NCBI GenBank assembly: GCA_905178155.1
Contig: CAJINV010000028.1
Coordinates: 41,761-105,760, forward strand
Length of the DNA stretch: 64,000 nt
Direction: 5' to 3'
Origin: Amoebophrya sp. A120
Taxonomy: Eukaryota; Protista; Dinoflagellata
Part shown: in pieces, positions 6,372-35,700 of the stretch
Position numbering within the stretch: position 1 is the first letter of the stretch
Layout of the letters: every line of letters begins with the position of its first letter
The notes under the pieces: generated by a model
Told to the model about the DNA's origin: nothing
Database searches by the model: none
The model's input: only the letters and a program-made list of their open reading frames with translations
Program-made: the position numbers and the translations under genes

Positions 6372-7171
6372 TTACATTTCCATAGCAAAGTCTTCCTCCT
6401 CTTCCATGTTTAAAAACTCCTCCGCCTCATCGTCATAGTTTTCCGACTCCTCATATTCGTACTCCATTTCGACGTCCTCTTCCAGAACCTCCCCATCCTC
6501 CTCGTACTCGTCGTCGGCATCGACATGCTCACCCACCTCCTCGTGATACTGCTCGCCCCCTTCTACATCGACATTCTCCTCCACCAGTTGCCTCTCGTCA
6601 AAACCGGACGAGACCTCCGCAGCAAGAGCTTCCGGAGCATCGGCGAAGTTGTTGCCATTGCCACCACCGCCTATCGAAAAGTTGTCCGTGTTGAAGGTAC
6701 CGGAAGTGCTTGGGCTTGTAGAGGCGGTGGTCGCCGGGGTTTGGGGCGCGAACATCTGCTGGTCCAGCATTCCCTCTTTCGAGCGGAACACCTGGTTCGG
6801 GAAAATCACACCTTCATCCAACCACTTGTGCAAGCACGGACGGCAGTGCAAGTCCTTAAAAATGACCTCCGAGCAGTAGCGGGCCTGCAACACATCCTCG
6901 TCATCGGATTCCTCTTCGGAGGACATTTTTTCCTCGTTTTCCGCAGACAGTTCCCCGTCGGTGTCGTTTTCGGAACGGTTGTCGCCATTGTTCTGTTGAT
7001 CGTCGTTTGCATCATCCGCATTTTGTTGTACCTGTTGCTGATGTCCACGTCCAGCAGCAGCAACGCCCAGGTCAATATCATTTTGTGCTCCATAATTGTC
7101 GTTTCTTCTTCTTCTTCTTCTTTCGATTCCCTCCTCCATCATCCGCACAACCCGCACCAGCGTGGGTCGCC
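6372..7171 (-). CDS. Acidic exon of the host gene interrupted by the cassette array
   Basis: 268-aa E/D-rich ORF (6372..7178) bounded by introner-like sequence. It continues upstream via exons ~7322-7380 and ~7543-7789. Confidence 0.7.
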
Positions 7172-7321
7172 TTTGCATTGCAAAAGTATCGTACTAGTAT
7201 AAATTGCATTACAAATTTTTCCAAAAGGAAAAAGGGAATTTGTAATGCTGATTCAGCTAAAAAGAGAGATTTGTGATGCATGACTGCAATTACTACGAGT
7301 GCGATACTTTTGCACAGGATA
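7172..7321. mobile_element. Introner-like non-canonical intron, TGCAAAAGTATCG family
   Basis: IR TGCAAAAGTATCG (7179-7191) / CGATACTTTTGCA (7302-7314); flanks TCGCC/TCGAC; separates coding segments. Confidence 0.8.
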
Positions 7322-7380
7322 TCGACCGTGCTCCAGCAAGCCGAATTGTATCAGACATCTCTTCCGCCAGTCTGGGGGGG

Positions 7381-7542
7381 TATACGGTGCAAAAGTATCG
7401 TTATCGTATTCGTTTTCGTACAAGAAGTAGAAACCGCATGACAAATTTCCTCAGCATGAGAAATGGAATTTGTAATGCGGATTTACATTGAGAAAGAAAT
7501 CTGTAATGCATGACTGCGATAGTACAACTTTTGCAATGCATA
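7381..7542. mobile_element. Introner-like non-canonical intron, TGCAAAAGT family
   Basis: IR TGCAAAAGT / ACTTTTGCAATGCATA, with internal GCATGACAA and TTGTAATGC motifs. Confidence 0.75.
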
Positions 7543-7789
7543 ACGGTTCAGCTTCAGCAAAACGTCGTACTCCTCGACCTCGTCCAACCGTCCCAGTCTC
7601 CGGTTCCTCCCCGAACAAATCGTCACTGTGCATCGCGTTTTTATTCGGTTGAGTCGCCTTTGCTCCTCTTCCCTTCTCTTTTGTCGCTCTTCTGCTTCCC
7701 GTTCTTGCCGCATCATATCCGAACAACCGTACCGCTGCTCTTCCGGGGACAGTTTGAGCCAATCTTCGTGAAATCGTCCTCTTCCCTTT
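7543..7789 (-). CDS. Host exon, 3' part of the disrupted target exon (KGRGRFHEDWLKLSPEEQRYG...LLKLNR)
   Basis: Part of ORF 7483..7941. The 28-bp site encodes KGRGRFHED in this frame, followed by a coiled-coil-like E/R-rich segment. Confidence 0.7.
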
Positions 7790-9191
7790 TCACACAGCAC
7801 AGGATGTGATGATAAATAATTTATGTCACAGCTGACATCCCGCCTCACAGCTGACATCCCGCCCTCCTCCTTCGCGCGGAAATTCCTCAAGCACCACGGC
7901 CTCCTGACGGTGAACGCGGTTGCGTCAGCAAATTTCGACAAAAGTAAGTTGTTCCAGGCGCTGACCCCGTTGGCGCAGAGTGAGGTGAGGCAGTTGATCC
8001 TAGCCTATTATATATTTTGTTACTATTCTCGTGTACAACTACAACGCTAGATATTGATATTTCTTGTTATGCTGATCGATAGTTGATCCGTATCCAACTA
8101 GCGCTTATGCTGAGTACGCCTCTGCGCAGAATCTGGGTGCTGCTTGCTGCAGCAGAAATTTATTACAAGTAGTAACGCGCTGATGAATATGAGTTGTGTT
8201 ATCTTTGAAGTTAAGTGCCTATCTGTAAAATTATGTGGACCTAACAAGACCAAGACCCAACAAAGAATACGATCCAGGTAGAACAAAATACAAAATGTTT
8301 ACTGACCTACTCAAGGTCGTACGTGGTTAGCTTGGGGGTATCTTTATCTTCTTATTCTTTAGCCATTGAGGCTACTCCTGTTCGTGTCATGAGGTGCATG
8401 CCATGCATCTTATCCTCATCATCATCTCCATCTTCAGTATGTGACCACCATCACATTTCCATCTTTCACTATCGTGCTATCTACTTTGGATCGTTCGTAT
8501 TGGATCTTGGGGCATGTGCTGAGTGCATTGCAATAAATTAGTAAGTTGCCTGAGTGAGAAGTGAAAGTAAACTGCACGCGCATCCACATAAAGTGCTACG
8601 CATAAGAGTAACATACATCATGGACGATATCACATGACAAAGCCATTGACTGGGAACATAATCGTGTGAGATTCTGAGTGACCAAATGCGCAGACCTAGC
8701 GCTGCCACCTTTGGTGAGACCAGCACGAAGCAGCGTGTAGCGAAACTCACTGTTTTCAAAGCTCTGGTCGGTGCGGTTAAATGCTCTGCCACACAAGTCG
8801 CAGTTGTCTCGCGCTAAGAATTCAAGGTCTTGTTTTTTTTTTAGTTTATTCTCTCTCATGTCGCTGTCGGTGTCCGCATGCACATGGATATTTAGCGCGC
8901 GCGTAGCTCTCGGTCCATCGTTACATCGCGTCCTTCCGGCACGTGACCAAGCTGAAGATGCAAATCGGTGGCGGACTTCGGTCGATGTGTGATTCGGTGT
9001 TTCTCCTTTCGTTTCTTGGGGTTTGGACTTGTGTCACTGTTGTTTTTTCCTGGGGTACTGTTTGCATCTTCGCCTCCGGATATATGACTGGGATTAATTA
9101 GACACTCACGTAAGTAGCACTCCCTTACTTGTAGCCACTAATTATTACATTGATTCCTAGTCTCGTCCTGTAATGAGACTCCGCTGAGCCA
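7790..9191 (+). mobile_element. Cassette C1 (non-autonomous)
   Basis: Flanked by 28-bp sites. Shares the leader CACAG(G/A)ATGTGATGATAAATAATTT with the recombinase cassettes. Contains a short ORF (7823-8050) and a 19-bp tandem duplicate TCACAGCTGACATCCCGCC. Confidence 0.75.
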
Positions 9192-9219
9192 ATCTTCGTG
9201 AAATCGTCCTCTTCCCTTT

Positions 9220-10750
9220 AAATGCACAGATGAATGAATAAAGAGGCTAGAATGCGAATGAGATGAAATGAAGCCTAATAAGTACTAGATGAATGCGTGG
9301 AGACAAAAAACGTAAGAAATAGTAGGACTGAGTGAGAATCTGAAACGTAGGATCTGTCTTACAGTAAGAGAGTGAGCTTCGATCTTGTCGCAGAGTGTTA
9401 CAAGCATCGCTGGTCATCTCTTGCCTCGACACAAAACTTCTGAAACACAAAGTCGAACTTGTAAAGTACTACTAAATCTAAATCCAGACTACGAAATAAG
9501 CATGACAAATTGATTGCGAGTGAAACTTACTGAGAAAGAACCTAATACGACGTCTATCTAGCATGATAAATTTTGTGTGCTTAAAACGCGCTCTGTTTCT
9601 GAATTTAAATCCAGTGGTCTAACCTACATCTACGAGCACATCCTGACAACAGAAGTCAGCTCTTCTTCCCAGAACGCTTCTCCTCTTCTCGTTGTGGGCT
9701 GCCCGCAACCGCTGCGGAGCTCTCGGTCTCGTACTACTCCTGGCGTCTACGCACTCGATCCCGAGTGTGCGCAACTTCTGCTGGCGATTTCTACTTTTGC
9801 TGCGCCGTCTTCCCCGCCTGCCCGATGGCAAGCGCCTAGCACTACTGCTGGGCCTCTTTCTTCGTCTTCTTCGCCGGTTTCCGCGGTGGTGCTTGCTGCC
9901 TTGCTGGTCTGGTCTGCTTCCGGTGCTGGTGGCCATATGTTTTCATGCTTCTACTACAAAAACATATCTAGCGCGGCCCTTGTTCCTCTGCCTTCTTTTC
10001 TTTGTTCGCGTAGCTTTTCCCAGTCTTTGGGCGTAGTCCTGCTGTCAGCAAATTCGACGGGTTGCGCTTTAGTCCGGCGCGGTCCTCGAATCTTGCAACA
10101 ATCTGGGCACTATCTTTCGCTTCGCTTTTCGTCCTTTCCTAGCCTAGTAGTGCGACCCAGTCCCTTTGTAGTTGCTTCTTGCCGAGCATCTACACAAGGC
10201 GTCTAGTTCTAGCACTACTGCAAGCTTGTCGGTTTCCTGCGTAAAACCTTCTTTGTGACGTAGAAAGTTTTCACGCCAGGCAACCTAGACAATTTCTAAA
10301 CGATCCAACTGCTGAGGATTCAGATTTTACGACCCAACTACGCGGCAGTTGGGCTCATAACTCTGTTGGGAAATAGTCCCAATCCTGTTTGGCAGTGGTC
10401 GTTGGATCCAGTTGGAGTGAACACAGGGCGTGTTCCAAGTCTAATCTCCATGAGCGGAGAGTATCTATCTACGATGGCACGGCGTCAATTTCTAGTCTCT
10501 ATTCAGTAACAAGTAGCCATCTTGGCCCTGTCTAGTGTGTTCGTGTGTTCATGTGAGTGCTGTGCATCTATTTCCCTATCTAGTGACCTAAGCATTTTTG
10601 ATTTTCCATGAACCTAGCTACTTGGCACGATTTTCCTACCTATTTTGTAGGCCTATGATCATTATGAGTTCTTGTACGATTTGGATCCACGACATCAGTA
10701 GGATTGGGGATTTTACCGATCCAAACACGCTGCTCTTCCGGGGACAGGTA
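9220..10750. mobile_element. Cassette C2 (non-autonomous, unknown cargo)
   Basis: Flanked by 28-bp sites. Its right end copies the host target flank (CGCTGCTCTTCCGGGGACAG). Confidence 0.7.
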
Positions 10751-10778
10751 ATCTTCGTGAAATCGTCCTCTTCCCTTT

Positions 10779-12560
10779 TACGCAACACAGAATGTGATGA
10801 TAAATAATTTGCCTCGAAATCCTATGGCACCCGATGCAAGTTGTAGCTGTAGCTGACTGATGTTGATAGTGTGTGTTGCCCGCTGCTGATGCTTGGGCCA
10901 GGAGTGCAGAGACCCTTAAGCTCCTGATGGTGCTGAAGCTTGTTCTTTTCTCTCGTGAGTCGTATTTTCGTCGATGAAGCATGACGAATGATAGTCTGCT
11001 TCTATCGTACATCGCTCGACTGATGTCGTCAAATCGTTATTGCCATCGTTGAAATGAAACTACACTCGCTGGTCGTTGTCGTTGCTTGAGTGAGCCGATG
11101 TGTAAAGCATACTTGGGTTGCAAAAGATGAGCGCTGACAGAAATTACATCAGAAATAGTTGCTATCTGTTACAGTTGCTGATAGTTTAAAGCTACTAGTA
11201 CGCATTCTCCTTTTGAAGTTGGTTTTGAATCTGTACGTGCTGAGCAAAAGCAAGATGTCCTCCTCCGCACCGTTTAAAGGCGTGATAAAGTCCGTTTCTT
11301 TGAAGAAGGACTACACCACGAACTGCAACGTCAAGCTGTGGCAGCAGTACAAGCAGGGGAGTGGTTTGATGGATGCAGTGATCACGGTGGACGCGCTGAC
11401 TGACTACGCTGAGTTCCTCGTTAGCAAACCGTATGCGTCAGCACTGAACTACCTCAGTGCGGCGGTAGGTTACGAGGCTAGCAGATCCCGACTTGAAGAA
11501 TCGGTGCACTTCGAGCGCCGATTCAAACAGCTGAAAAACTCCGTCGTGAAGGAGTTGAGTGGAGTTTTGCCCACGCAGGCGCGCGTCTTCTGTGTGAGGG
11601 AGCTGGTGCGGCTCCCGCAGCCGATGCGTACGATTCTGGTGCTCCCGATCTACCTGGGGTGGCGTGATGCATCACTGCGCGAGGCCACCAATGCTGATGT
11701 CGAGCTGGTTGGTGGCCAGCTCTTAGTCCATTGCGGGAAGGACAAGGTGAAGAAAAGCGCAGGAAGAACGGTAGCCGTCCCCTGCTGCTGCTCCCCGGCG
11801 TTCAAAAACGTCCTTTGCCCGATACATGGGCCTAGCTGGAACCTGAGCGTGGACGATGCAGACAGGGCGGAAGCGTTGCGGTCTTGCAATGCCCAGCTCT
11901 CCCGCCACTCCTTTAGGAGGACGCTGGCAGTGCATGTCCGCCTGCACCTACATGATTCCGGGCTGGAATGGGATTCCCTTCCGGCGGTGCAAAAGGCGAA
12001 AATAAATCGCCACTTCGGTTGGGGCCAAGGCAGCGTGATGTTCTGCCGGTACTCTGGCGACTACCTGAACTACGAGCAGGACCTGCGGCTCCCATTGGGC
12101 CGCATGATGGAAAGCTTCAGCCAATGACGCAGGAGGTGTGTTGCGTGCAGATGGTTCGTCCGGGGTGGCCGGGTTGTGCAGTTGGTGGCGTGCTGCTATG
12201 CGCTGGCGAGGTCACGGGACCCACAGCGTGTAGATTGGATGTGACGCTACCGAGGGCACAGCCCCCCCCATGTTGAACGATGATGGTGATCTGATTCCTA
12301 CAGTGTTGAAAGAAAGTTTTTCTTGTGTAAGTACGATGCTGCTGTGTGCCTCTGTCGCTTCGCTTTCGGTTGCTAGTTCTACTGACACACCAACGCTGAC
12401 TGCGCTATACCTTAAAAGTCTGTCATGAAAGTTGCTTTGTTCGACTACATTTTTCGGTTGCCTTGTGTATACGCTGTTTTTTTTGGGAAGCGGGACGCAT
12501 CGGATAAGTCATGCGAAGGAGCGCCTCCTCTGGTAAGGGCGGCGGGAAAGCCTCCCGCCA
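10779..12560 (+). mobile_element. Cassette C3, tyrosine-recombinase element
   Basis: Flanked by 28-bp sites; one long ORF; terminal hairpin GGCGGGA-AAGCC-TCCCGCC at 12541-12559. Confidence 0.85.
11255..12127 (+). CDS. Tyrosine recombinase (DIRS/Crypton-type YR), 290 aa from ATG 11255
   Basis: Catalytic set in the correct order: R (YLGWRDASL), K (GKDK), HxxR (HSFRR), W (HFGW), Y (FCRY). Also has the CP motif (VLCPIH) typical of eukaryotic YR elements. The paralog at 13000 supports the ATG start. Confidence 0.9.
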   Translation: MSSSAPFKGVIKSVSLKKDYTTNCNVKLWQQYKQGSGLMDAVITVDALTDYAEFLVSKPYASALNYLSAAVGYEASRSRLEESVHFERRFKQLKNSVVKELSGVLPTQARVFCVRELVRLPQPMRTILVLPIYLGWRDASLREATNADVELVGGQLLVHCGKDKVKKSAGRTVAVPCCCSPAFKNVLCPIHGPSWNLSVDDADRAEALRSCNAQLSRHSFRRTLAVHVRLHLHDSGLEWDSLPAVQKAKINRHFGWGQGSVMFCRYSGDYLNYEQDLRLPLGRMMESFSQ

Positions 12561-12588
12561 ATCTTCGTGAAATCGTCCTCTTCCCTTT

Positions 12589-13975
12589 AAGTGCAACACA
12601 GAATGTGATGATAAATAATTTGCCTCGAAATCCTATGGCACCCGATGCGTGATGCTAGTGCCGTGCTGTCTTGCTGCTCTGTGTGGGCCAGGAGTGAAGA
12701 AGACCCTAAAGCTCCCGCTGGTGCTGGTGCAAAATTTTTGATTTGTTCCTACTAAAAATCCGTTGTCACTGTCGTTGAAGCCTGTTGATCGTTTGTTGTC
12801 GTATGCCATGCTGTCGTTGCCATCGCAGTCGTGTCACACTTCGCATTATCGTCGTCTAAGTAAGAGAGATGATGAGGCTGAGTGATGAGTAGTTGTCCGT
12901 GCAAATCGTGAAGTGTCGATGTTTCACTAGTTATGGACATAGTTACTGATGCTACCTGAATCTGTGGTCTAAAAGTCTTCTACTAGAGTTGAGAAAAGGA
13001 TGTCGTTTAAAGGCGTCCAAAAGTCTGTGTCCTTGCGAAAGGACTACAGCAGCAACTGCAACGTGAAGCTGTGGCTGCAGTTCAAGACCGATTTTGGGAT
13101 CACTGACGGTGCCACCATTACGGTGGATGAGCTGACGGACTTTGCTGAATTCTTGGTTTCCAAGCCCTACGCATCCGCTGCGAACTACCTCGGCGCCGCT
13201 GTTGGCTACGAGGCAAGCAGGAGCAAGCTGCAGGAATCGGTGCACTTCGAGCGGAGCTGAGCGGCTTGTTGTCGCGGAACGAGTGCGAGAAGTTCCTGAA
13301 CCACGTGCGGCTGTATGACTCCTCGGACTGCATTTGGTGCCTGCAGACGATGTTCCAGGTGTTTTTCAAGCAGTACTCTGCGACCTGCGACAAGTCTCCG
13401 GAGTATTTCATGGCGATGTTCAACAACCAGATGCAGCAGCGGTTGTTGAAAAAGATGAACGCTGGGACTTCCACCACCCCCGGTGCCGGTGCTGGCTCGA
13501 AGAACCAGAATCGTGGAAACCACGTTTCTGGTTCCAGGGATTTGGTGCCCCGTTCGGATACGGCCAGCAGGTGCAGGCCCCGACTGCCAGCGCCGCCCAG
13601 ATGCAGTCCCCGCAGCCGTTTAGCGGTGCCCCGACCGGACCGAAGACCTACCTCTTCTTGCCCAAGGGCATCTGCCACAAGGAGGTGAAGGTATTACCCC
13701 CTCCCCTGTGTTGCTGATGAATGAAGATGTTGATAAAGATGTTTGTAGATGATTATCAGGTGACGCAGCGATGAGATTCTTTAGTTGACCATGCAGATGT
13801 ATGATGTTGCTGCTACTTCTTCTTGCTTAAAAGACTGACCTCTGTGACCTAGTGCGATCATCTACCAATTACAATCCCAGGATGGCCAGTGCCCGGACCG
13901 CCAGAACTGCAAGCACAAGCACAAGGGTGATGACGGGTACCCAGATGCTGAAGTCGCCGCTGCACTGGCGCGGCG
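12589..13975 (+). mobile_element. Cassette C4, internally deleted YR-family derivative
   Basis: Flanked by 28-bp sites; leader shared with C3; truncated YR fused to a second ORF; terminal hairpin TCGCCGC...GCGGCGA at 13954-13976. Confidence 0.85.
13000..13260 (+). pseudogene. Truncated tyrosine recombinase paralog (N-terminal 86 aa, no catalytic domain)
   Basis: MSFKGVQKSVSLRKDYSSNCNVKLW...ESVHFER aligns with the C3 YR N-terminus, then stops. Confidence 0.9.
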
Positions 13976-13985
13976 ATCTTCGTGA
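13254..13985 (+). CDS. 5'-truncated gag-like / CCCH zinc-finger ORF with a GT-AG intron (13691-13880)
   Basis: Splicing AAG|GTATTA...TCCCAG|GAT gives CHKEVKDGQCPDRQNCKHKH, a canonical C-x8-C-x5-C-x3-H finger. The stop TGA (13983-13985) lies inside the 28-bp site. There is one frame change near 13515-13540. Confidence 0.65.
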
Positions 13986-14146
13986 AATCGTCCTCTTCCC
14001 TTTAAATGCAAATTCCTCGCTTTTTCCTCCATCCGCAGCCGTCGCTGGTAGGCACGCTCATCCTCGGACTGATCACAGTCGGAGGTGTCAGAGACCGCCG
14101 GGCCGCCGCGGGGCAGATCGAAATCTCTGCTTGGTGAAGACGACAT
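13976..14146 (-). CDS. 5' part of the disrupted host exon (MSSSPSRD...NLHLKGRGRFHED), copy 1
   Basis: ATG at 14146; reads the 28-bp site in the same frame as the 7543-7789 segment. Confidence 0.7.
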
Positions 14147-15214
14147 GATCTTGTTAGGGGTAAGAAAATGATCTACGACCCTTTTTCAAACGGTATTGGA
14201 ACGGTTTAGGTAACAAGAGCGCGCCTTGAAGAAGAGACGAAATCTTATTATTAAAGTTGATTTCTTCCGAGGTGATCTTCTGCTAGTACCGTAGCATTGG
14301 CATTGCAGATCTTCAAAAATGACATTCAAGAACGCTCTTTCTTGACTGCTACTACTGTTGCGGCACTGGTTTTTTCAAGAAGAATGGTGTTGCTCGATAT
14401 TAGGATGATGCTGATGATCTGATTATGATTTCGTAGTGATGGATCCTCAGCGTCAGCGGGGCGTAAAAGGTGGGTAGGAATTCGAATTGTCAGTCGTGGT
14501 TTTTCAACAAGTTCACCCCTGTTGATCGGTGTTCCAAAAGTTGAAATAGCGTCTCCGTCTCAGGATAGAAAAAGTGTTCCGAAGATGATATCAGAATGGT
14601 TTTCTACGACACACGTACGATCTACACAAATCTGGAAGCGGTCAACGGCAGCATGATGAACATGGTGCACGTGTTCCAGCTTCTTTCTTATCTGCATGCA
14701 TCTGTGGTATTGAATAGTGTCGGTTTATTTTGGACGAACACGAAGAGCTTCATCGGGATCCTGTCAAGCTGCAGACGAAATGGCAACAATAGCAAAGCTT
14801 CATACAACAAGGAGCTGCAGTTACGAGAATGATTTCTATCTAGCATGATCGTATACCTGCGTAGAAGGTAAATGGATCGATCTGTCTCGTCGTACTTGCT
14901 TTGTTGACTTCTACCTCCGTCGTGTGATCTTCTACCAGTATCGTAGCCTGGATCATCTTGGAGGACGACCTTCAGAGGCACATGTAGCAGAACCACGGAT
15001 GAAGCAACAATCAACTGACGGATCTCATTCTCACGTGCGAAACTGCATAACGACATTGCGATTGGAGATGACGTCGAAATTCAAGAGTTTGCGTCGAATT
15101 CGAAAAACGTAAAGGTTGGTTAATTTAAATTCAAAAGCTCTCTCGCTCTCTCGCGACTCTCCCGACCTCGCGACTCTCCTGAGCCAATCTTCGTGAAATC
15201 GTCCTCTTCCCTTT

Positions 15215-16724
15215 AAGTGGACGTGTCAACGTCAAGGACTGTCGCATGAGCGATTACATGCCGTCCTACCAGAGAGAACACTACTAAGCTAACTAGGTAC
15301 CCTCATGGTACTACGGAGTTATGGATGTGATTCATACTACGGGCTTCATACCTGAAGCCATTCTGGCACTGTGTTCCATTGGTATCCATTGCCATGGTTG
15401 TAGTGTGTCCCTGTGTGTGGATCCTAGTGGTGTGATCCTACTCATGATCCTACTGCTGATCCTCTAGACCCATCTATATTCTAGGTTTGTCATGCGCAAA
15501 ATCGAGAAAGAACCTCGACCAACTGCCTCTGGTGCCCTTTTTCAAAATAGTCGCATGCTGATACTAGCACTCGCGAACCGAATTTCTAGGGATAAGGCTA
15601 CCAGGCTACTCGAGGAAATGCACCCCAGCGCAGAAGACAAATCAGAAAGGAGGAAATATAGCCTCTAATACTCCCAATGTCTGAAAATAAATCTGAGTCC
15701 TTCGCTTCAAAGCGGAATGCAACCTCTACCCAGAAACTGCTAGAACCTGCAAAGGGGTTCATCAGCATCGCGCGAAAATTTCCGGTAAGGTCCTGAGCAG
15801 ACATCCTCCAATAAAACCCAGCAAATGCAACAAATCTCCTCCGTGGTTCAAGCGACTACGCGCAGCTTCCACATCGGAAAAGTTACCACATTGGCCCCAA
15901 GGACAAAAGCATACGGACTGGGGGGTCTTCCTGTATTGACCTGGTCCAAGTTCCAAAGCTAATGTCTGCCTGCATTTTCAGCTGCTGATAAACAAATCAG
16001 AGCGGCGGCGGATAGATCAAAACAACAGAAGAACTGCAATGCTTTCCGCGTCCAGAAAGCTTTGCGATTCCTGTGCGGCTTTCCTAGCGAGGTCAACAGC
16101 CTCGCCGGCTTTCAGACTCGTACAAGCTCAAAGCTTTCAGTCGACCACTGGTCCCAGTCTCGGTCTAATTCGACTTCTTTTCTAAGTACATTCGACACAC
16201 GCACGCGGCGTTTCCTGCTACCACGCAAGATTTCTTTGAGGAGGCATTAGATAGCGAGAGCACAAAACCGCTCCACTTGTCTCAGCACGACTTACACCCG
16301 AGAAGTTTCTTCACTTTCATTATTCTAGCGACCGCAGGGAGGGATTGGCGTTCGATAGTGGCAACACTATCTTCACAAGCCATTTCTTTCCTTATCCTCG
16401 CCAACAGCAACCGCTCCCAAGCCTAGGCTTGGCGCGCTGCGTGGCGCCTTCGCCTTAGCCAAAAGCCGTAGGAACTTCCAACCAGCAACAGACTCAGTTG
16501 CGGTGTAGTTCTGGCCTAAAGAAGCCTCTTCTTCTATCGACAAAAGCAGTTGATCCCAAATGGTCGACCGACCTCTTTTTCTACACAATTACAGCAGACA
16601 GCTGCCAATGAGGAAGCTAGTCCTTCTGTCTCAACCTCAAAACCTCAGTCGCCTTTTTCCTGAAAGGCGTTCTCGTGGACCCCGACTGCATTCCCGGGAG
16701 CTGCTCCTTCGGGCAATCGAGCCA
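15215..16724. mobile_element. Cassette C5 (non-autonomous, unknown cargo)
   Basis: Flanked by 28-bp sites. The right end GCTGCTCCTTCGGGCAATCGAGCCA is a degenerate copy of the target flank. Only short ORFs. Confidence 0.7.
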
Positions 16725-17226
16725 ATCTTCGTGAAATCGTCCTCTTCCCTTTTACGCAACACAGAATGTGATGATAAATAATTTCCTCGTATCCTTTGGT
16801 TCCCGATGCAAGTTGTAGCTGTAGCTGACTGATGTTGATAGTGTGTGTTGCCCGCTGCTGATGCTTGGGCCAGGAGTGCAGAGACCCTTAAGCTCCTGAT
16901 GGTGCTGAAGCTTGTTCTTTTCTCTCGTGAGTCGTATTTTCGTCGATGAAGCATGACGAATGATAGTCTGCTTCTATCGTACATCGCTCGACTGATGTCG
17001 TCAAATCGTTATTGCCATCGTTGAAATGAAACTACACTCGCTGGTCGTTGTCGTTGCTTGAGTGAGCCGATGTGTAAAGCATACTTGGGTTGCAAAAGAT
17101 GAGCGCTGACAGAAATTACATCAGAAATAGTTGCTATCTGTTACAGTTGCTGATAGTTTAAAGCTACTAGTACGCATTCTCCTTTTGAAGTTGGTTTTGA
17201 ATCTGTACGTGCTGAGCAAAAGCAAG

Positions 17227-18099
17227 ATGTCCTCCTCCGCACCGTTTAAAGGCGTGATAAAGTCCGTTTCTTTGAAGAAGGACTACACCACGAACTGCAA
17301 CGTCAAGCTGTGGCAGCAGTACAAGCAGGGGAGTGGTTTGATGGATGCAGTGATCACGGTGGACGCGCTGACTGACTACGCTGAGTTCCTCGTTAGCAAA
17401 CCGTATGCGTCAGCACTGAACTACCTCAGTGCGGCGGTAGGTTACGAGGCTAGCAGATCCCGACTTGAAGAATCGGTGCACTTCGAGCGCCGATTCAAAC
17501 AGCTGAAAAACTCCGTCGTGAAGGAGTTGAGTGGAGTTTTGCCCACGCAGGCGCGCGTCTTCTGTGTGAGGGAGCTGGTGCGGCTCCCGCAGCCGATGCG
17601 TACGATTCTGGTGCTCCCGATCTACCTGGGGTGGCGTGATGCATCACTGCGCGAGGCCACCAATGCTGATGTCGAGCTGGTTGGTGGCCAGCTCTTAGTC
17701 CATTGCGGGAAGGACAAGGTGAAGAAAAGCGCAGGAAGAACGGTAGCCGTCCCCTGCTGCTGCTCCCCGGCGTTCAAAAACGTCCTTTGCCCGATACATG
17801 GGCCTAGCTGGAACCTGAGCGTGGACGATGCAGACAGGGCGGAAGCGTTGCGGTCTTGCAATGCCCAGCTCTCCCGCCACTCCTTTAGGAGGACGCTGGC
17901 AGTGCATGTCCGCCTGCACCTACATGATTCCGGGCTGGAATGGGATTCCCTTCCGGCGGTGCAAAAGGCGAAAATAAATCGCCACTTCGGTTGGGGCCAA
18001 GGCAGCGTGATGTTCTGCCGGTACTCTGGCGACTACCTGAACTACGAGCAGGACCTGCGGCTCCCATTGGGCCGCATGATGGAAAGCTTCAGCCAATGA
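17227..18099 (+). CDS. Tyrosine recombinase, second copy (identical protein)
   Basis: Translation is identical to 11255-12127. Confidence 0.9.
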   Translation: MSSSAPFKGVIKSVSLKKDYTTNCNVKLWQQYKQGSGLMDAVITVDALTDYAEFLVSKPYASALNYLSAAVGYEASRSRLEESVHFERRFKQLKNSVVKELSGVLPTQARVFCVRELVRLPQPMRTILVLPIYLGWRDASLREATNADVELVGGQLLVHCGKDKVKKSAGRTVAVPCCCSPAFKNVLCPIHGPSWNLSVDDADRAEALRSCNAQLSRHSFRRTLAVHVRLHLHDSGLEWDSLPAVQKAKINRHFGWGQGSVMFCRYSGDYLNYEQDLRLPLGRMMESFSQ

Positions 18100-18971
18100 C
18101 GCAGGAGGTGTGTTGCGTGCAGATGGTTCGTCCGGGGTGGCCGGGTTGTGCAGTTGGTGGCGTGCTGCTATGCGCTGGCGAGGTCACGGGACCCACAGCG
18201 TGTAGATTGGATGTGACGCTACCGAGGGCACAGCCCCCCCCATGTTGAACGATGATGGTGATCTGATTCCTACAGTGTTGAAAGAAAGTTTTTCTTGTGT
18301 AAGTACGATGCTGCTGTGTGCCTCTGTCGCTTCGCTTTCGGTTGCTAGTTCTACTGACACACCAACGCTGACTGCGCTATACCTTAAAAGTCTGTCATGA
18401 AAGTTGCTTTGTTCGACTACATTTTTCGGTTGCCTTGTGTATACGCTGTTTTTTTTGGGAAGCGGGACGCATCGGATAAGTCATGCGAAGGAGCGCCTCC
18501 TCTGGTAAGGGCGGCGGGAAAGCCTCCCGCCAATCTTCGTGAAATCGTCCTCTTCCCTTTAAGTGCAACACAGAATGTGATGATAAATAATTTGCCTCGA
18601 AATCCTATGGCACCCGATGCGTGATGCTAGTGCCGTGCTGTCTTGCTGCTCTGTGTGGGCCAGGAGTGAAGAAGACCCTAAAGCTCCCGCTGGTGCTGGT
18701 GCAAAATTTTTGATTTGTTCCTACTAAAAATCCGTTGTCACTGTCGTTGAAGCCTGTTGATCGTTTGTTGTCGTATGCCATGCTGTCGTTGCCATCGCAG
18801 TCGTGTCACACTTCGCATTATCGTCGTCTAAGTAAGAGAGATGATGAGGCTGAGTGATGAGTAGTTGTCCGTGCAAATCGTGAAGTGTCGATGTTTCACT
18901 AGTTATGGACATAGTTACTGATGCTACCTGAATCTGTGGTCTAAAAGTCTTCTACTAGAGTTGAGAAAAGG

Positions 18972-19957
18972 ATGTCGTTTAAAGGCGTCCAAAAGTCTGT
19001 GTCCTTGCGAAAGGACTACAGCAGCAACTGCAACGTGAAGCTGTGGCTGCAGTTCAAGACCGATTTTGGGATCACTGACGGTGCCACCATTACGGTGGAT
19101 GAGCTGACGGACTTTGCTGAATTCTTGGTTTCCAAGCCCTACGCATCCGCTGCGAACTACCTCGGCGCCGCTGTTGGCTACGAGGCAAGCAGGAGCAAGC
19201 TGCAGGAATCGGTGCACTTCGAGCGGAGCTGAGCGGCTTGTTGTCGCGGAACGAGTGCGAGAAGTTCCTGAACCACGTGCGGCTGTATGACTCCTCGGAC
19301 TGCATTTGGTGCCTGCAGACGATGTTCCAGGTGTTTTTCAAGCAGTACTCTGCGACCTGCGACAAGTCTCCGGAGTATTTCATGGCGATGTTCAACAACC
19401 AGATGCAGCAGCGGTTGTTGAAAAAGATGAACGCTGGGACTTCCACCACCCCCGGTGCCGGTGCTGGCTCGAAGAACCAGAATCGTGGAAACCACGTTTC
19501 TGGTTCCAGGGATTTGGTGCCCCGTTCGGATACGGCCAGCAGGTGCAGGCCCCGACTGCCAGCGCCGCCCAGATGCAGTCCCCGCAGCCGTTTAGCGGTG
19601 CCCCGACCGGACCGAAGACCTACCTCTTCTTGCCCAAGGGCATCTGCCACAAGGAGGTGAAGGTATTACCCCCTCCCCTGTGTTGCTGATGAATGAAAAT
19701 GTTGATAAAGATGTTTGTAGATGATTATCAGGTGACGCAGCGATGAGATTCTTTAGTTGACCATGCAGATGTATGATGTTGCTGCTACTTCTTCTTGCTT
19801 AAAAGACTGACCTCTGTGACCTAGTGCGATCATCTACCAATTACAATCCCAGGATGGCCAGTGCCCGGACCGCCAGAACTGCAAGCACAAGCACAAGGGT
19901 GATGACGGGTACCCAGATGCTGAAGTCGCCGCTGCACTGGCGCGGCGATCTTCGTGA
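18972..19957 (+). pseudogene. Second copy of the truncated YR plus CCCH ORF (cassette C4')
   Basis: Translations are identical to those at 13000-13985. Confidence 0.85.
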
Positions 19958-20118
19958 AATCGTCCTCTTCCCTTTAAATGCAAATTCCTCGCTTTTTCCT
20001 CCATCCGCAGCCGTCGCTGGTAGGCACGCTCATCCTCGGACTGATCACAGTCGGAGGTGTCAGAGACCGCCGGGCCGCCGCGTGGCAGATCGAGATCCCT
20101 GCTTGGTGAAGACGACAT
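19948..20118 (-). CDS. 5' part of the disrupted host exon, copy 2
   Basis: MSSSPSRDLDLPRGG...KGRGRFHED; differs from copy 1 by a few substitutions. Confidence 0.65.
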
Positions 20119-21112
20119 GATCTTGTTAGGGGTAAGAAAATGATCTTTTACGACCCTTTTTTAAACGGTATTGGAATGGTTTAGGTAACAAGAGCGCGCC
20201 TTGAAGAAGAGACGAAATCTTATTATTAAAGTTGATATTTTCCGAGGTGATCTTCTGCTAGTACCGTAGCATTGGCATTGCAGATCTTCAAAAATGACAC
20301 TCAAGAACGCTTTTTCTTGACTGCTACTACTGTTGCGGCACTGGTTTTTTCAAGAAGAATGGTGTTGCTCGATATCGGGATGATGCTGATGATCTGATTA
20401 TGATTTCGTAGTGATGGATCCTCAGCGTCAGCGGGGCGTAAAAGGTGGGTAGGAATTCGAATTGTCAGTCGTGGTTTTTCAACAAGTTCACCCCTGTTGA
20501 TCGGTGTTCCAAAAGTTGAAATAGCGTCTCCGTCTCAGGATAGAAAAAGTGTTCCGAAGATGATATCAGAATGGTTTTCTACGACACACGTACGATCTAC
20601 ACAAATCTGGAAGCGGTCAACGGCAGCATGATGAACATGGTGCACGTGTTCCAGCTTCTTTCTTATCTGCATGCATCTGTGGTATTGAATAGTGTCGGTT
20701 TATTTTGGACGAACACGAAGAGCTTCATCGGGATCCTGTCAAGCTGCAGACGAAATGGCAACAAGAGCAAAGCTTCATACAACAAGGAGCTGCAATTACA
20801 AGAATGATTTCTATCTAGCATGTGCATGATCGTGCAACTGCGTTGTAGAAGGTATAGTGGATCGATCTGTCTCGTATTTCTTTTGTTGACTTCTACTTCC
20901 GTCGCGTGATCTTCTACCAGTATCGTAGCCTGGAACATCTTGGAGGGCGACCTTCAGAGGCACATGTAGCACAACCACGGATGAAGCAACAATCAACTGA
21001 CGGATCTCACGTGCAAAAAAACTGCATAACGACATTGCGATTGGAGATGATGTCGAAATTCAAGAGCTTGCGTCGAATTCGAAACACGTAAAAGTTGGTT
21101 AATTTAAATTCA

Positions 21113-21790
21113 AAAGCTCGTTCACCAAGTCATTCAGGATGTGCTTGTGTATGAAACGCAACATGATCTCGCTGACTTTTTCGTTATTCTGCAAACTATC
21201 CATCGCGCTGCCTCCTACTCCGGTCAGTTTTACGGTCAATTCGACAGGATTCTCGTCCGGCTGCTGCACATCGCTCCTGTCGGTCACTGTGATTCGAGGA
21301 GCGTTCGGACCCGTCTCGTTCTCCCCGGTTAACGAATTCTTGTTGTCGACCCTGCTTGATGTCGCTGCAAAAGATAAGGACTCGACGTTCTCATGTCCAC
21401 CAGCACCAGCTGCTGGTGACCAGCATCAGCATCGTCCTCTTTCCTTACCAGCTGCAGCTGTAGTGTGGAGGACACGTCAGCAGCACCAGTGGCAGAGGTA
21501 GCAGCATGATCCTCGCCATCAGTAGTTGTACCAGGATCACTTTCATCCGTGGTCTCTTGTAGTCCTCCCGGAGGATGCGGTGCGTGTTTATTGAGACTGG
21601 TTTGAATCGCCCGGCGGAGCTGCTGATCCGAGCTATAACCTGGCGTGTCGTTGCCTGCGGTTTCCAAAAATATTCTCGATAGTGACGCCACAACCGGGAC
21701 ATGATCAGATGCTCGTCCTGCTGTAGAAGTCTTCGTGTTCTTGGTGTGCCCGCTTATGATTTCTGATTCTGGGTCTTCTCGTTCATAGAA
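21113..21790 (-). pseudogene. Partial, frameshifted duplicate of the surface-protein gene (~33900-34875) lacking its introner
   Basis: Shared peptides DSLQNNEKVSEIMLRFIHKHILNDLVN and QQLRRAIQTSLNKHAP; contiguous across the position of the 34205-34515 element. Confidence 0.85.
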
Positions 21791-22988
21791 CATGATTTCG
21801 CAGACCGGATAGGAGGAAGGCGCCTTTGTGTTAGCTGGTTCGCCCGCGCGTTCTCGTGCGCGTCGGTCAGGGACAGACTACGGCTCGCAGCAGCCACCTT
21901 TACTGCACTATCCCGTGGCGGAGCCTCCGTTCCTCGCTGACACGTCGGCGTCGCGAGGGGTGAATTTTTCTCGGTAGCACCTTCGCCCGATAAGGCCTCC
22001 GGGGTCGCGCGCAGGTCGGCTCCAAGTTCGAGGCTAGTAGCGCTCGCGGCAGTGGCGCTCTATGCTGCAGTATCCCACTCTGCGCCTCTTGCAGCGTCCA
22101 TACCGAGAGGTGCGTGTTCATCGGTGACGCCCGGTCGCAGCGCGAACTCACCGACCGTCTCCGCCACCGCCGAGCAAGTCGGAATAGCTGTTTTACTGAT
22201 TGCAGCAGCTCTGCCGCGGCTACTCCTGCCCGCCGATTCCACATGCTGCAGTACGTTCCGAGCAGCATCTTCTTCGGCAGCATTTTCCGATGGTGTGCCG
22301 TAGTTCCATTTTAGATTTAGGGGCCTTCCAGATATTACGTAGGCCTCTCGTTCCTTTAGGCTCACGTCGATGACCGGGTCCGCCGCGACGCCTGCAAGCA
22401 GAGACAGCTTCTGCTGCTCTATCTGCTCTTTTGTCTTCATTTTGTGCAGCAGCTGTACGCGACGATGTTGCGCGGCTTGGTTCTACTACCACTACTTCTG
22501 TGTAGCAGCGCATGTCGGCAGATGCCGCCCCCGTCGTACCACCAGCTCCCTTCGCCGACGTCTTTTTTGATGTGGGCAAACGACGGCGCTCTACCGACCG
22601 CGACCGTAATCTCGAGCTTCCCCCCAGACGACGATGAGGCAGCACTCCAGTGCCGACTACTGATGCGCTGCTGTATCCCCCGGCAGCGTCAGCGGGACGC
22701 AAGACGGCGTGTTGGCAGACCCGTGCTGCACTTTCGAAGAAGTGTTCACCCATACAGAGCTCCCCTGCAACACAGGACTATCGCGGCGCGCTACCCGTTC
22801 AGGGACAGGAATTTCGCCGTTGTTAGATCACCGTGAGCTGGAAAAAATCATGCTGATTCCACCTTTCAGCACCTCCCGAGGGACTTCGTGCAGAACGACA
22901 TGCACCACTACTAAGAAGTGGACCATGATTTCGCAGACCGTAGTGCTCTATAAGAAGTGGAACATGATTTCGCAGACCGGATAGGAGG
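21788..22988 (+). repeat. 29-bp direct repeats flanking a duplicated gene segment
   Basis: GAACATGATTTCGCAGACCGGATAGGAGG at 21788-21816 and 22960-22988, with a partial third copy at 22924-22940. Confidence 0.9.
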
Positions 22989-32718: not shown

Positions 32719-35700
32719 TTACTTTGCTGGTGCGGCTTGCGATCCCGCGGCAAAGGCAACGGACCCCTGCAGCGCCGACGAAGCTTTTCCACCAAAGGCA
32801 CTGCTCGACCCGGGCTTGACCGCAAAGGCAGACGACCCGCCGCCAAAGGCCCCGGCGTTCGCACTCTTCCCCATCCCGGCAAACGCCTCTGCTTGTTGAC
32901 TTCCGCCACCGGAAAGAGGTGGCCCGAACCCGGAGCTTGCGGCACCTGCTTTGTTCTTACCAGCAGCAGCTGCACTAGTGGCACCGCCGAACGCACTGCT
33001 GCCAGCGGCAAACGCCGTACTACCGCCAGCCGCTTTGCTGCCAACCGCGGCACTCCCGCTACCAAACGCGGTACTACCGCCCCTCGCTTTGCTGGCAACC
33101 GCGGCACTCCCGCTCCCAAACGCCGCACTGCCGCCTTGAAACGCGCTGCTGCTGCCTTGAAACGCGCTACTGCCCCCACCCCCGAAGTTGCGGCTTCCAC
33201 CCGGGGCTGAAGGAGGTGCGGTAGCGCTCGAACTGCCGAAGCTGGCGGAGCTTTTACCTTGAAACGTTGCGCTACTGCTCAAAATGTCTTCGCCCCCACC
33301 ACTTTCCAAAGAGTCGCGACCCTCTCCTGCTAGCGGTTCATACTCATCCTCTTTTTCTTTTTCTTTCGCTTGCTGCAGTTCTTTTTGGTGTTGTCTTCTG
33401 TACTTCTCGAGCTGCTCCTGGTCGGGTCCGTATATGCACCGCTTTATCCGGTGCCGAAGCACGAAGAGCCACGAGAAGACATGAATGGCAAGCAGCACAT
33501 ACAAGCCGCCGTACGTATTCAGCACTGCGTTCACCGGGTTCCAAACCTTCAACTTTTCCAGCGCAATCGGCTCCAGCACGCAATGGCTGAAAATAGGCCC
33601 ACTTGGACTTGCTTCATTTTCATCTTCATCTGTAGAATTTGTTGCGTTTCTTCTCCTGTCTGCGGTCCCCCGGGACGAGAGAAGAGAAAGCGCTTCTCGG
33701 TCCTGCTCTTCCGCGGCTATCGCTTCGGCGAAAGATGACGAACTAAAATTTACTGTACTGGAAGTACTACTATTGTCCGAGGAAGCGGTTTCGTTCGCGC
33801 CGCCAGTTGTAGTTGTATCGCTTGCTGTGCCTCCAGTCGTTATTACAACGCCCGGCTTCATCTCCACGTACACGGAGTTCTCCGACATACCATGCAGACC
33901 GCTCTTATTCACCAAGTCATTCAGGATGTGTTTGTGTATGAAACGCAACATGATCTCGCTGACTTTTTCGTTATTCTGCAAACTATCCATCGCGGTGCCT
34001 CCTGTTCCGGTCAGTTTTACGGTCAATTCGAAAGGATTCTCGTCCGGCTGCTGAACATCGCTGTCGGTCACTGCGATTCGAGGAGCGTTCGGATCAGTCT
34101 CGTTCCCCCCGGTTGACGAATTCTTGTTGTCGATCCTGTTTGATGTCGCTGCAAACGATAAGGACTCGACTTTCTCATGTCCACCAGCACCAGCATCAGC
34201 AATGTATTGTGAGGAAAAATCGCCACTCCCCATATCGAAAACGAAATTTGTGATGCTGCATTTGAGTACACAAATCGACTTGCATTGCTAGAAGGCCAAG
34301 AGCCGCAGCTGTGGCCTCGCTTGCAGGGAATTTGTCATGCTGTTTCCCACTTCCAGCTGCCTCCTGTTATGCTGAAGATGCGAGGCTTTCCCATGCCGCC
34401 AAGCACCACAGTCGGCATCTCTTCCCTTCTAGCTTAACAAAGCTGATTTGTGGCCACAAATCTGCATCACAGGTTCCCGTTTTGATATGGGGAGGGGGGA
34501 TTTTTCTTCTTGATACAACGTCCTCTTTCCTAATCAGCTGCAGCTGTAGTGTGGAGGACGCGTCAGCAGCAGCAGTGGCAGAGGTAGCAGCATGATCCTC
34601 GCCCTCAGTAGTTGTACCAGGATCACTTTCATCCGTGGTCTTTTGTAGTCCTCCCGGAGGATCCGGTGCGTGTTTATTGAGACTAGTTTGAATCGCCCGG
34701 CGGAGCTGCTGATCCAAGCTATCTGTCGTGTCGTTGCCTGCGGTTTCCAAAGACATTCTCGATAGTGACACCACGACCGGGACATGATCAGGTGCTCGTC
34801 CGTCTGTAGAGGTATTCGTGTTCTTGGTGTGCCCCCTTATGATTTCTGGGTCTTCTTGTTCCTCTGCTTCGTAAAAAGACCTACCGTCAGTGTTGCTCCT
34901 AGATGTTCTGCTAGGGTCGTCCTTGTCCTCTCGTCCGTCGAACGTCAAGAAGCTGCTCGCCGTGCTGTCTCCTGCGGACTCTGCAGCACTCTTGTTCACT
35001 TTGTTTGCGTACGCCTTCAACGCGTCCACCTTTTCCTGCTCCTCCGCGTCTTTCAGGGCCTTCAGCTTTGCGTCTTCAGTCGCTTGCAACTCCGCAACGG
35101 CCTCGCTACTCAACACAAGCCGCACCTTCAATTCCGACTGGCCCTTCATTCGCGCGCTGGTTTTTGTTCCCGCCAGCAGCGACTCGTCGGTGGGAAAGAG
35201 GTGGGATAAGTCCACGTGCGTGCTCACTTCCTCCACAGTAGTGACTTCCTCCACATTCCGGTTCTGTTTCAGCCACACTCGGTTCCCGGGAATTTCCTTG
35301 GTTTGTCCGTACTGGGTTTGCGTTGCGATTAACAAAATCTTTGCATCGTCGTAATTGCCGTAGAGACCGGCTGGGTAAGTGGTTATATCGGAGGTGGTCG
35401 CTGCAGTTCTTGCAGAAGTTCTTGCTCTAGTACTACTGCTTCTTCTAGCCGTGTAGTACGCGGCAGAAGTTTCTTGTGCGAGGGACATCGTGGCCGAGGA
35501 CATGTTGGTGGTGCTACCACCTTCGCTCGTGGTTCCATCATCTCCTTCGCCCGTCGTAGTACCCGCTGCCGCATTCGTGGGCGAAAGGACCAATGTTCCG
35601 CCATTTTTGAACGTGACACTGGTAGAGACCTTGGCACACTTGATCGTCGTGTCGATCGAGGACAAAATCTCCTCGTCTGTTGTGTTGCCGCTCCCACCTG

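Follow-up and report, generated by a model that had tools for sequence, protein, structure and literature searches.

How does a gene for a tyrosine recombinase (YR) come to sit in a stack of unlike DNA blocks, each set off from the next by the same 28 bp, in the genome of a eukaryote? The question arises from a 64,000-nucleotide stretch of DNA from the dinoflagellate Amoebophrya sp. A120 (C28:41761-105760, hereafter the window), which we compared with the A120 assembly (115.5 Mb, 401 contigs). An initial annotation had read the stack as an integron-like array of circular elements that integrate repeatedly through a shared 28-bp core. Our comparison with a paralogous locus indicates instead that the 28-bp sequence, here called T, is a piece of a host coding exon. 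The account that we favour, with a confidence only slightly above even, is serial insertion with long target duplication at an exon site that each event regenerates, followed by exchange between T copies.

The 28-bp repeat and its host exon

A pattern search confirmed that the window contains nine exact direct copies of T, with 0 mismatches and all on the plus strand, while 100 shuffled controls gave zero matches. Extended to the whole genome, as the initial annotation had proposed, and allowing up to 2 mismatches, the search found only these nine array copies and one copy each on two unplaced contigs, C277 (1.8 kb) and C341 (1.4 kb). An exact copy was absent from the JGI metagenomes. The T copies delimit eight modules of 1183-1782 bp. 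The heterogeneity first described, at least five types of 1.2-1.8 kb, was borne out, with six types now distinguished: M1, M2, M3 (repeated as M7), M4 (repeated as M8), M5 and M6. M1, M2 and M6 are unrelated in sequence to the remaining modules, and the repeated modules are nearly identical (99.66% for M3 versus M7; 99.93%, or 1 difference in 1387 nt, for M4 versus M8). All nine T copies are perfect although the DNA adjoining them diverges by 5% to more than 25%.

Genome searches with the left flank plus T, and with T plus the right flank, led to a paralogous locus at C2:761552-762203. There the left flank (92% identity), one T-like copy (22 of 28 positions) and the right flank (83%) are contiguous; a reconstructed empty site, made of left flank, T and right flank, served for alignment and translation only. 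On the minus strand a reading frame is open through T in both paralogs and begins at an ATG in both (the C2 open reading frame (ORF); position 20118 of the window). Over 97 codons its nonsynonymous divergence (dN) is 0.039 and its synonymous divergence (dS) 0.244, a ratio of 0.16. These comparisons place T at about codons 47-55 of the first exon of a host gene, whose C28 paralog is interrupted by the array. The uninterrupted C2 paralog, with its T-like copy, shows T to be host DNA and not a core borne by the elements, and the shared core of the initial annotation has to be given up; the sister elements described below are bracketed by unrelated 29-bp and 38-bp repeats. In the assembly, the host frame that opens at 20118 reads through the ninth T copy into antisense M8 and stops after 94 codons, and the frame copied in M5 likewise runs into M4. 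When host-exon peptides were compared with database proteins of a restricted length range, no annotated protein was found for either paralog. Between C2 and C28, T differs at 6 of 28 positions and the surrounding exon at 16 of 263 (binomial P about 0.006), most changes reading as synonymous.

Most T copies within the array are adjoined by extra host flank. Its left-hand form is GAGCCA after M1, M5 and M6, CCA after M3, and after M2 a 20-mer whose spacer is altered; its right-hand form is AAATGCA, AAGTGCAA or AAGTGGA (before M2, M4 and M6, and in C341). Because the C2 paralog also reads AAGTGCAA, these extras are copies of host sequence. Read as nested target duplications, the junctions give 34 bp for M1, 64 bp for M2, 31 bp for M3, 36 bp for M4 and 41 bp for M6, and the M5 event gives 1171 bp plus a 40-nt filler. 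The 28-mer is the minimum common to all junction repeats. Neither dyad symmetry nor inverted-repeat arms were detected in T, and when 111-nt windows were folded at seven junctions, hairpins beside T were not significant (z-scores -2.6 to +1.2) and no common structure emerged.

The positions of all features are collected in Table 1. Three of the sequences found next to T, M2, M6 and the C341 module, are patchworks whose pieces recur at other places in the A120 genome: positions 419-1509 of M2, for instance, are a dispersed repeat with 80-90% identity to 5 other loci. The unique part of M1 holds one dispersed repeat as well (8234-8535), and the final 720 nt of M4 are unmatched anywhere else in the A120 genome. 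M5 also duplicates the host start codon (ORF 13862-14146, minus strand). C341 consists of a unit of 1313 nt that contains a single T and whose ends overlap by 49 nt, as expected of a tandem or a circle; both T junctions of C341 were recovered in the contigs of two studies.

The published A120 genome was built from Illumina and Nanopore reads (PMC7789003). We checked the array against Illumina-derived contigs from two studies, which break at every T, so that junction support is one-sided. These contigs fully cover positions 7500-13499. All of them have a GTA insertion after 11006 and a T residue at 12496, where both assembled copies differ, and C277 shows a T residue at every variant position at which the reads have G or A; such discrepancies probably stem from ambiguity codes in the assembly or from consensus errors left over from the long reads.

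Table 1. Features of the array and its flanks, in window positions
Feature	Position	Strand	Description
Left flank	7545..7761	-	Downstream part of host first coding exon; 92% identical to C2 paralog
T copy 1	7762..7789	+	28-mer; encodes KGRGRFHED of the host exon on the minus strand
M1	7790..9191	+	33 nt of leader start fused to a 51-aa second-ORF fragment (7853-8005), then unique sequence
T copy 2	9192..9219	+	Exact 28-mer
M2	9220..10750	+	Patchwork; opens with 7 nt of host right flank, closes with a 20-nt left-flank copy
T copy 3	10751..10778	+	Exact 28-mer
M3	10779..12560	+	Recombinase element: conserved ~170-nt leader, intact YR gene, 433-nt tail
YR gene in M3	11255..12127	+	290 aa + stop
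T copy 4	12561..12588	+	Exact 28-mer
M4	12589..13975	+	Defective element of another lineage; leader preceded by 8 nt of host right flank and followed by a YR N-terminal fragment (12991-13254)
T copy 5	13976..14003	+	Exact 28-mer
M5 main part	14004..15140	-	95.1% copy of right flank 19976-21119 (1144 bp)
M5 end	15141..15186	+	40-nt low-complexity filler with internal 13-nt repeat, then GAGCCA (6 nt of host left flank)
T copy 6	15187..15214	+	Exact 28-mer
M6	15215..16724	+	Patchwork; module positions 3-270 and 273-645 are two different multi-copy sequences (84-92%)
T copy 7	16725..16752	+	Exact 28-mer
M7	16753..18532	+	Second M3 copy; YR gene 17227-18099
T copy 8	18533..18560	+	Exact 28-mer
M8	18561..19947	+	Second M4 copy
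T copy 9	19948..19975	+	Exact 28-mer
Right flank	19976..21120	-	Host start codon at 20118; first ~250 nt 83% identical to C2 paralog

The recombinase and its element family

The ORF of 290 amino acids (aa) in M3 and M7 is a genuine tyrosine recombinase with a full catalytic set, as the initial annotation had recognized. This assignment is solid because the catalytic set, profile matches, predicted fold, structural matches and language-model neighbours all support it. Sequence searches of Pfam, PHROGs and PDB with the single protein were blank or irrelevant (the Pfam Phage_integrase model does not reach it), IMG/VR contained no match, and the only close database relative is a protein of Amoebophrya sp. 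A120. An exhaustive HMMER search retrieved 55 relatives of the YR; those looked up are unnamed and come from short contigs of metagenomes. Alignment of 34 homologs reveals no variation at R137 and Y266 and conservation of at least 90% at K164, H218, R221 and W256, which gives the catalytic R-K-H-x-x-R-[H/W]-Y set; the same alignment shows a conserved Cys cluster (C177, C179, C188). A profile of the YR matched XerA (E value 8e-4), XerH and XerD in PDB. With the 34-sequence alignment, AlphaFold2 returned a model with a predicted local distance difference test score (pLDDT) of 92.9 and a predicted template modelling score (pTM) of 0.84, compared with a pLDDT of only 31 from the single sequence. 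The model has a two-domain Cre/Int-like fold, for which the best Foldseek matches were Cre, lambda Int, XerA and Tn1549 Int (probability 1.0). The language-model neighbours of the protein are Phage_integrase clusters.

Further members of the family were found by a six-frame search of the A120 genome with the YR. A full-length YR paralog on C13 (47% identity) belongs to a 2.86-kb element that comprises the YR and a second ORF of 248 aa, for which Pfam gave no match. A truncated paralog on C5 (70% identity), which is the annotated protein P0001, lies in an element copy of 0.92 kb. No reverse transcriptase (RT) or RNase H was found in M3, M4 or the C13 copy. All family copies are headed by a conserved leader of about 170 nt, the motif of which occurs at about 10 loci in the A120 genome, short leader fragments being located also on C7, C5, C9 and C1. 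The C7, C5b and C9 copies retain about 170-250 nt only, and C5a retains 0.92 kb.

The defective modules M4 and M8 had been taken for deletion derivatives of the intact element. They keep, however, about 83 codons of a YR lineage other than that of M3, with 77% amino acid identity, a dS of about 1.5 and a dN/dS of 0.13. The ratios between M3 and C5 (0.09) and between M4 and C5 (0.08) are similarly low, and dS between the lineages exceeds 1.5. These values indicate that the YR lineages diverged anciently and evolved under purifying selection, and M4 is thus not a deletion product of M3.

Like the array modules, both sister elements lie between perfect direct repeats: 38 bp at the C13 element (L030:8961-8998 and L037:1858-1895) and 29 bp at the C5 element (L031:8154-8182 and 9106-9134), where the truncated junction shows a GAGAG microhomology. 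No motif common to T, the 29-bp and the 38-bp repeats, or to repeats and elements, rose above shuffled controls. An apparent homology of the 38-bp repeat with the flank of the C1 leader fragment was rejected, since realignment leaves only TTGTAT beside the leader start. Self-comparison of the modules and the C13 copy revealed no inverted terminal or split direct repeats, only the flanking repeats of 28-38 bp; diverged short repeats could escape such a comparison.

Other readings of T, the leader and the elements were tried and discarded. A small-RNA reading, suggested by a TGATGA box like that of small nucleolar RNAs, found no Rfam match at E values up to 1 (positions 7000-22000), nor was a tRNA-like gene present. 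A spliced leader or trans-splice acceptor does not fit either: T and the leader are unlike the dinoflagellate spliced leader, and T occurs at one locus only. A Helitron-like reading, prompted by a TC start and a GC hairpin close to the 3' end, was dropped in view of the flanking repeats and the lack of a Rep/helicase. The leader contains a conserved hairpin with a 6-bp stem and a 17-nt loop (10895-10930, 12685-12720 and L030:9145-9180), in which the C13 lineage shows one compensatory change from G-C to A-T; the hairpin could be a protein-binding or RNA element.

On the minus strand of L055 (C1:8410500-8415500), a C13-type leader fragment directly follows a degenerate non-LTR (long terminal repeat) element with endonuclease- and RT-like ORFs, and is itself followed by an unrelated Cys/His-rich ORF of 182 aa. 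A segment of this C1 region is common to the leader fragments on C5 and C7, so the leader heads other cargo too.

Proposed serial insertion and exchange at T, and competing explanations

According to the account that we favour, T in the first coding exon of a minus-strand host gene would have been hit repeatedly, every insertion leaving its block framed by a new target copy. The inserts would comprise two anciently diverged members of a low-copy, RT-less family (leader, YR, second ORF), one intact and one defective, as well as a fragment of a third family member and patchworks of host and repeat DNA. Two anciently diverged YR lineages lie side by side between identical T copies, so the site was indeed hit repeatedly. 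To this extent the repeated integration at one site proposed by the initial annotation stands; it does not carry over to M2, M5, M6 and the C341 module, which are patchworks of host and repeat sequence. The 29-bp and 38-bp repeats at two other loci of the family suggest that the long repeat is tied to an insertion mode of the family, or of the genome, and not to a fixed core.

After the array had formed, exchange between T copies, by the resident recombinase or by homologous recombination, would have put the M3-T-M4-T block beside both copies of the flank. The identities of M3 to M7 and of M4 to M8 (99.7-99.9%), against 95.1% between M5 and the flank, imply that this block was copied much later than the flank was duplicated, and both block copies have identical 28-bp boundaries. 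We take these sequence comparisons to indicate that the block was copied recently and that the copying needed exchange at T. M3 and M7 differ only at 10811-10829 (M3 positions), where M3 is like the M4 leader and M7 like the C7-type leader. This pattern of matches indicates a conversion tract that extends from T into the leader; the proposed exchange would have converted, between M4 and M3, T together with some 60-80 nt of leader. A role of the recombinase, in integration or in T-T exchange, and the origin of the 28-38 bp duplication are what we infer from these observations.

Several points weigh against this account. To our knowledge, no tyrosine recombinase reaction duplicates a target of 28-38 bp, so that the link between enzyme and footprint is unexplained. 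The occurrence of the M3-M4 block twice with the same 28-bp boundaries fits recombination at T better than two independent events of staggered cutting, and several modules lack any element sequence, so the site rather than the element may be special. The published A120 protein set in the database has no model for the 290-aa gene, and two RNA runs from 2026 gave zero reads, which is no test of its expression. Contig depth was 31 for M1, 28 for M2, about 50-70 for M3 and 37 for M4. The M4 value, set against those of M1 and M2, does not support two M4 copies in every cell, and short-read depth thus confirms neither the second copy of M4 nor the precise count of T. The array may vary between cells or be partly over- or mis-assembled.

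Some of the evidence for exchange would equally suit T as the dedicated attB/attP-like site of the 290-aa YR, T-flanked DNA leaving as a circle with one T and re-entering at another T. Such a reaction would readily produce the recent M3-T-M4-T copy with its identical boundaries at two sites, each consisting of T plus flank, as well as nine perfect T copies amid 5% to more than 25% divergence, a conversion tract adjoining T, and the one-T unit of C341 with its overlapping ends and with junctions recovered in two studies. The depth values, which suggest heterogeneity in copy number, also agree with it, and bacterial integrative elements have att identity blocks of comparable length. We nevertheless consider this reading unlikely. 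T lacks inverted-repeat arms, and recombinases with 47-70% identity are accompanied by 28-, 29- and 38-bp repeats that have no common motif, so that each lineage would first have had to gain a perfect copy of a different host sequence before integrating. Junction extents vary on both sides of T, patchwork modules are implausible as circles, and neither circle junctions nor back-joined contigs nor order variants were found among the contigs of two runs, although such contigs drop rare forms and break at T. A small but real chance is left for a eukaryotic cassette system in which the leader serves as arm site and the YR acts on any pair of copies of a captured stretch of host DNA, about 30 bp long. 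If this were true, blocks including host exons and other elements would exit as circles, re-enter and reshuffle a stack within a host gene.

The footprint, a target duplication of variable length with one constant end and the other variably truncated, resembles that of target-primed retroposition. An RT supplied in trans would then act on RNA antisense to the YR; the leader end would correspond to the RNA 3' end, the long variable repeats would be ordinary target-site duplications, and template switching would yield the patchwork modules. In all family copies the opposite end is variable and the leader end constant, the minus strand of the flank beside that end is rich in A (5 of 5 cases), repeat length varies and modules are mosaic; the microhomology at the truncated C5 junction also fits. 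Site-specific non-LTR elements of trypanosomatids make target duplications of about 49 bp. ORFs like those of long interspersed nuclear elements (LINEs) are present in the A120 genome, from which non-LTR elements have been reported (PMC7789003). Yet a poly(A) or simple-repeat tail is absent, with only 0-4 A residues at the constant end, no partner LINE shares the leader, and none of the approximately 10 leader loci is the end of a LINE family. A strongly selected YR gene would moreover be pointless if the enzyme of another element moved antisense RNA, and the identical 28-bp boundaries of the two M3-M4 copies would be unexpected, which together make antisense retroposition improbable. Quite improbable, too, is a complex rearrangement without any activity encoded by the elements. 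In an unstable, segmentally duplicated region about 50-62 kb from a contig end, repair of breaks or template switching would have come back again and again to one short homology and copied in DNA from other places, and part of the repeat count may stem from assembly of a heterogeneous population. The 1.17-kb tandem duplication with its 40-nt templated-looking filler, the patchwork modules, the further segmental duplicates adjoining the array, the two unplaced variant contigs and the mismatch of depth with assembled copy numbers would all fit it. However, on other contigs the same family shows its long-repeat footprint at two loci that are clean and simple, nine returns to exactly 28 bp are unlikely by random template switching, and two anciently diverged YR lineages at one site point to targeting.

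A further possibility, likewise with a small chance, is that the host transcript removes the whole stack from T to T as a non-canonical intron bounded by direct repeats (a GA...AG reading inside T); if so, this would link the element family to the intron-generating transposons of Amoebophrya.

Known mobile systems and the genomic neighbourhood

Among described systems, the array family is best filed as a Crypton-like variant and not as an integron family, a placement made by organisation. Like Cryptons, it is a small, low-copy element with a YR as its only recognisable enzyme, lacking an RT and, as far as self-comparison shows, terminal inverted or long terminal repeats. Crypton, DIRS and Ngaro elements are understood to integrate without duplicating their target, and Cryptons share at most a few bases with it. 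The perfect flanking repeats, which measure 28 bp in the array, 29 bp on C5 and 38 bp on C13, thus set the present family apart. A 2025 survey likewise described Crypton-derived introners without target duplications (PMC12130899).

The integron comparison of the initial annotation holds in so far as heterogeneous units of 1-2 kb are split by a recurring short site and a real YR is encoded at the locus. It fails in that T is an invariant piece of a host exon without dyad or hairpin, whereas attC sites are variable and form hairpins. The YR, moreover, lies within a unit (T3-T4, and again T7-T8) and not beside the array, the units are not single promoterless genes, and the host is a eukaryote. 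Integration of the lambda or genomic-island type also places perfect direct repeats of tens of bp around an element that encodes a YR, and integrase lineages differ in their repeats. There, however, the element carries the identity block and the target is conserved across hosts, whereas here extents vary by junction and nothing shows a free element that carries the repeat. In site-specific non-LTR elements and in CRISPR repeat duplication, breaks tens of bp apart duplicate the interval between them, and reuse leads to repeat arrays; unlike these systems, the array elements have no endonuclease/RT or Cas1-like gene.

The nearest other YR in A120 (29% identity) is encoded by a 6.96-kb DIRS-like retrotransposon with at least six identical copies. 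Its ORFs specify the YR, a gag-like CCCH-finger protein and a 780-aa product whose nearest Atlas clusters carry RVT_1/RT_RNaseH. As in DIRS, Ngaro and PAT-like elements, both this retrotransposon and the array family order the YR before a second ORF; they differ in that the array family lacks RT and RNase H, and the 6.96-kb element lacks a target duplication. One copy runs from L028:8177-10000 into L035:1-5143 (C4) and is identical in L026/L033, L027/L034 and L029/L036. In two of the four copies examined, the first ~190 nt are repeated at the right end. With at least six copies 100% identical, the 6.96-kb element was active very recently. A 334-aa recombinase at L025 (C6:3320798-3323980) has the same HxxR/GW/Y motifs and directly follows an ORF with RNase H-like motifs; this locus is probably a second DIRS-like family.

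We know of no described eukaryotic YR element with target repeats as long as those found here, and a literature search yielded no report from Amoebophrya of recombinase arrays or long target repeats. An RT-less family under purifying selection is bracketed by perfect host repeats of 28-38 bp at three loci, and one of the three carries a 12-kb stack inside a coding exon. Either the family integrates by a route undescribed for tyrosine recombinases, or a general insertion or repair process of Amoebophrya makes very long target duplications and regenerates its own target. Both readings bear on how exon insertions are tolerated in an intron-rich, transposon-invaded parasite genome.

Around the array, 50-62 kb from the start of the contig, the whole neighbourhood consists of duplications in a mosaic. 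Segmental duplicates were found at 21121-21784 versus 33908-34861 and at 21820-22588 versus 1443-2181 (91-94% and 73%), and they start exactly where the similarity between M5 and the right flank stops. Repeats of about 260 nt with terminal inverted repeats (7180-7540; L011 (C341) 135-710 and 970-1230) occur in thousands genome-wide, with 7612 candidates at first look, and resemble the miniature inverted-repeat transposable elements (MITEs) or introner elements described for Amoebophrya. One of these repeats interrupts the C2 paralog of the host exon and is absent from the C28 copy.

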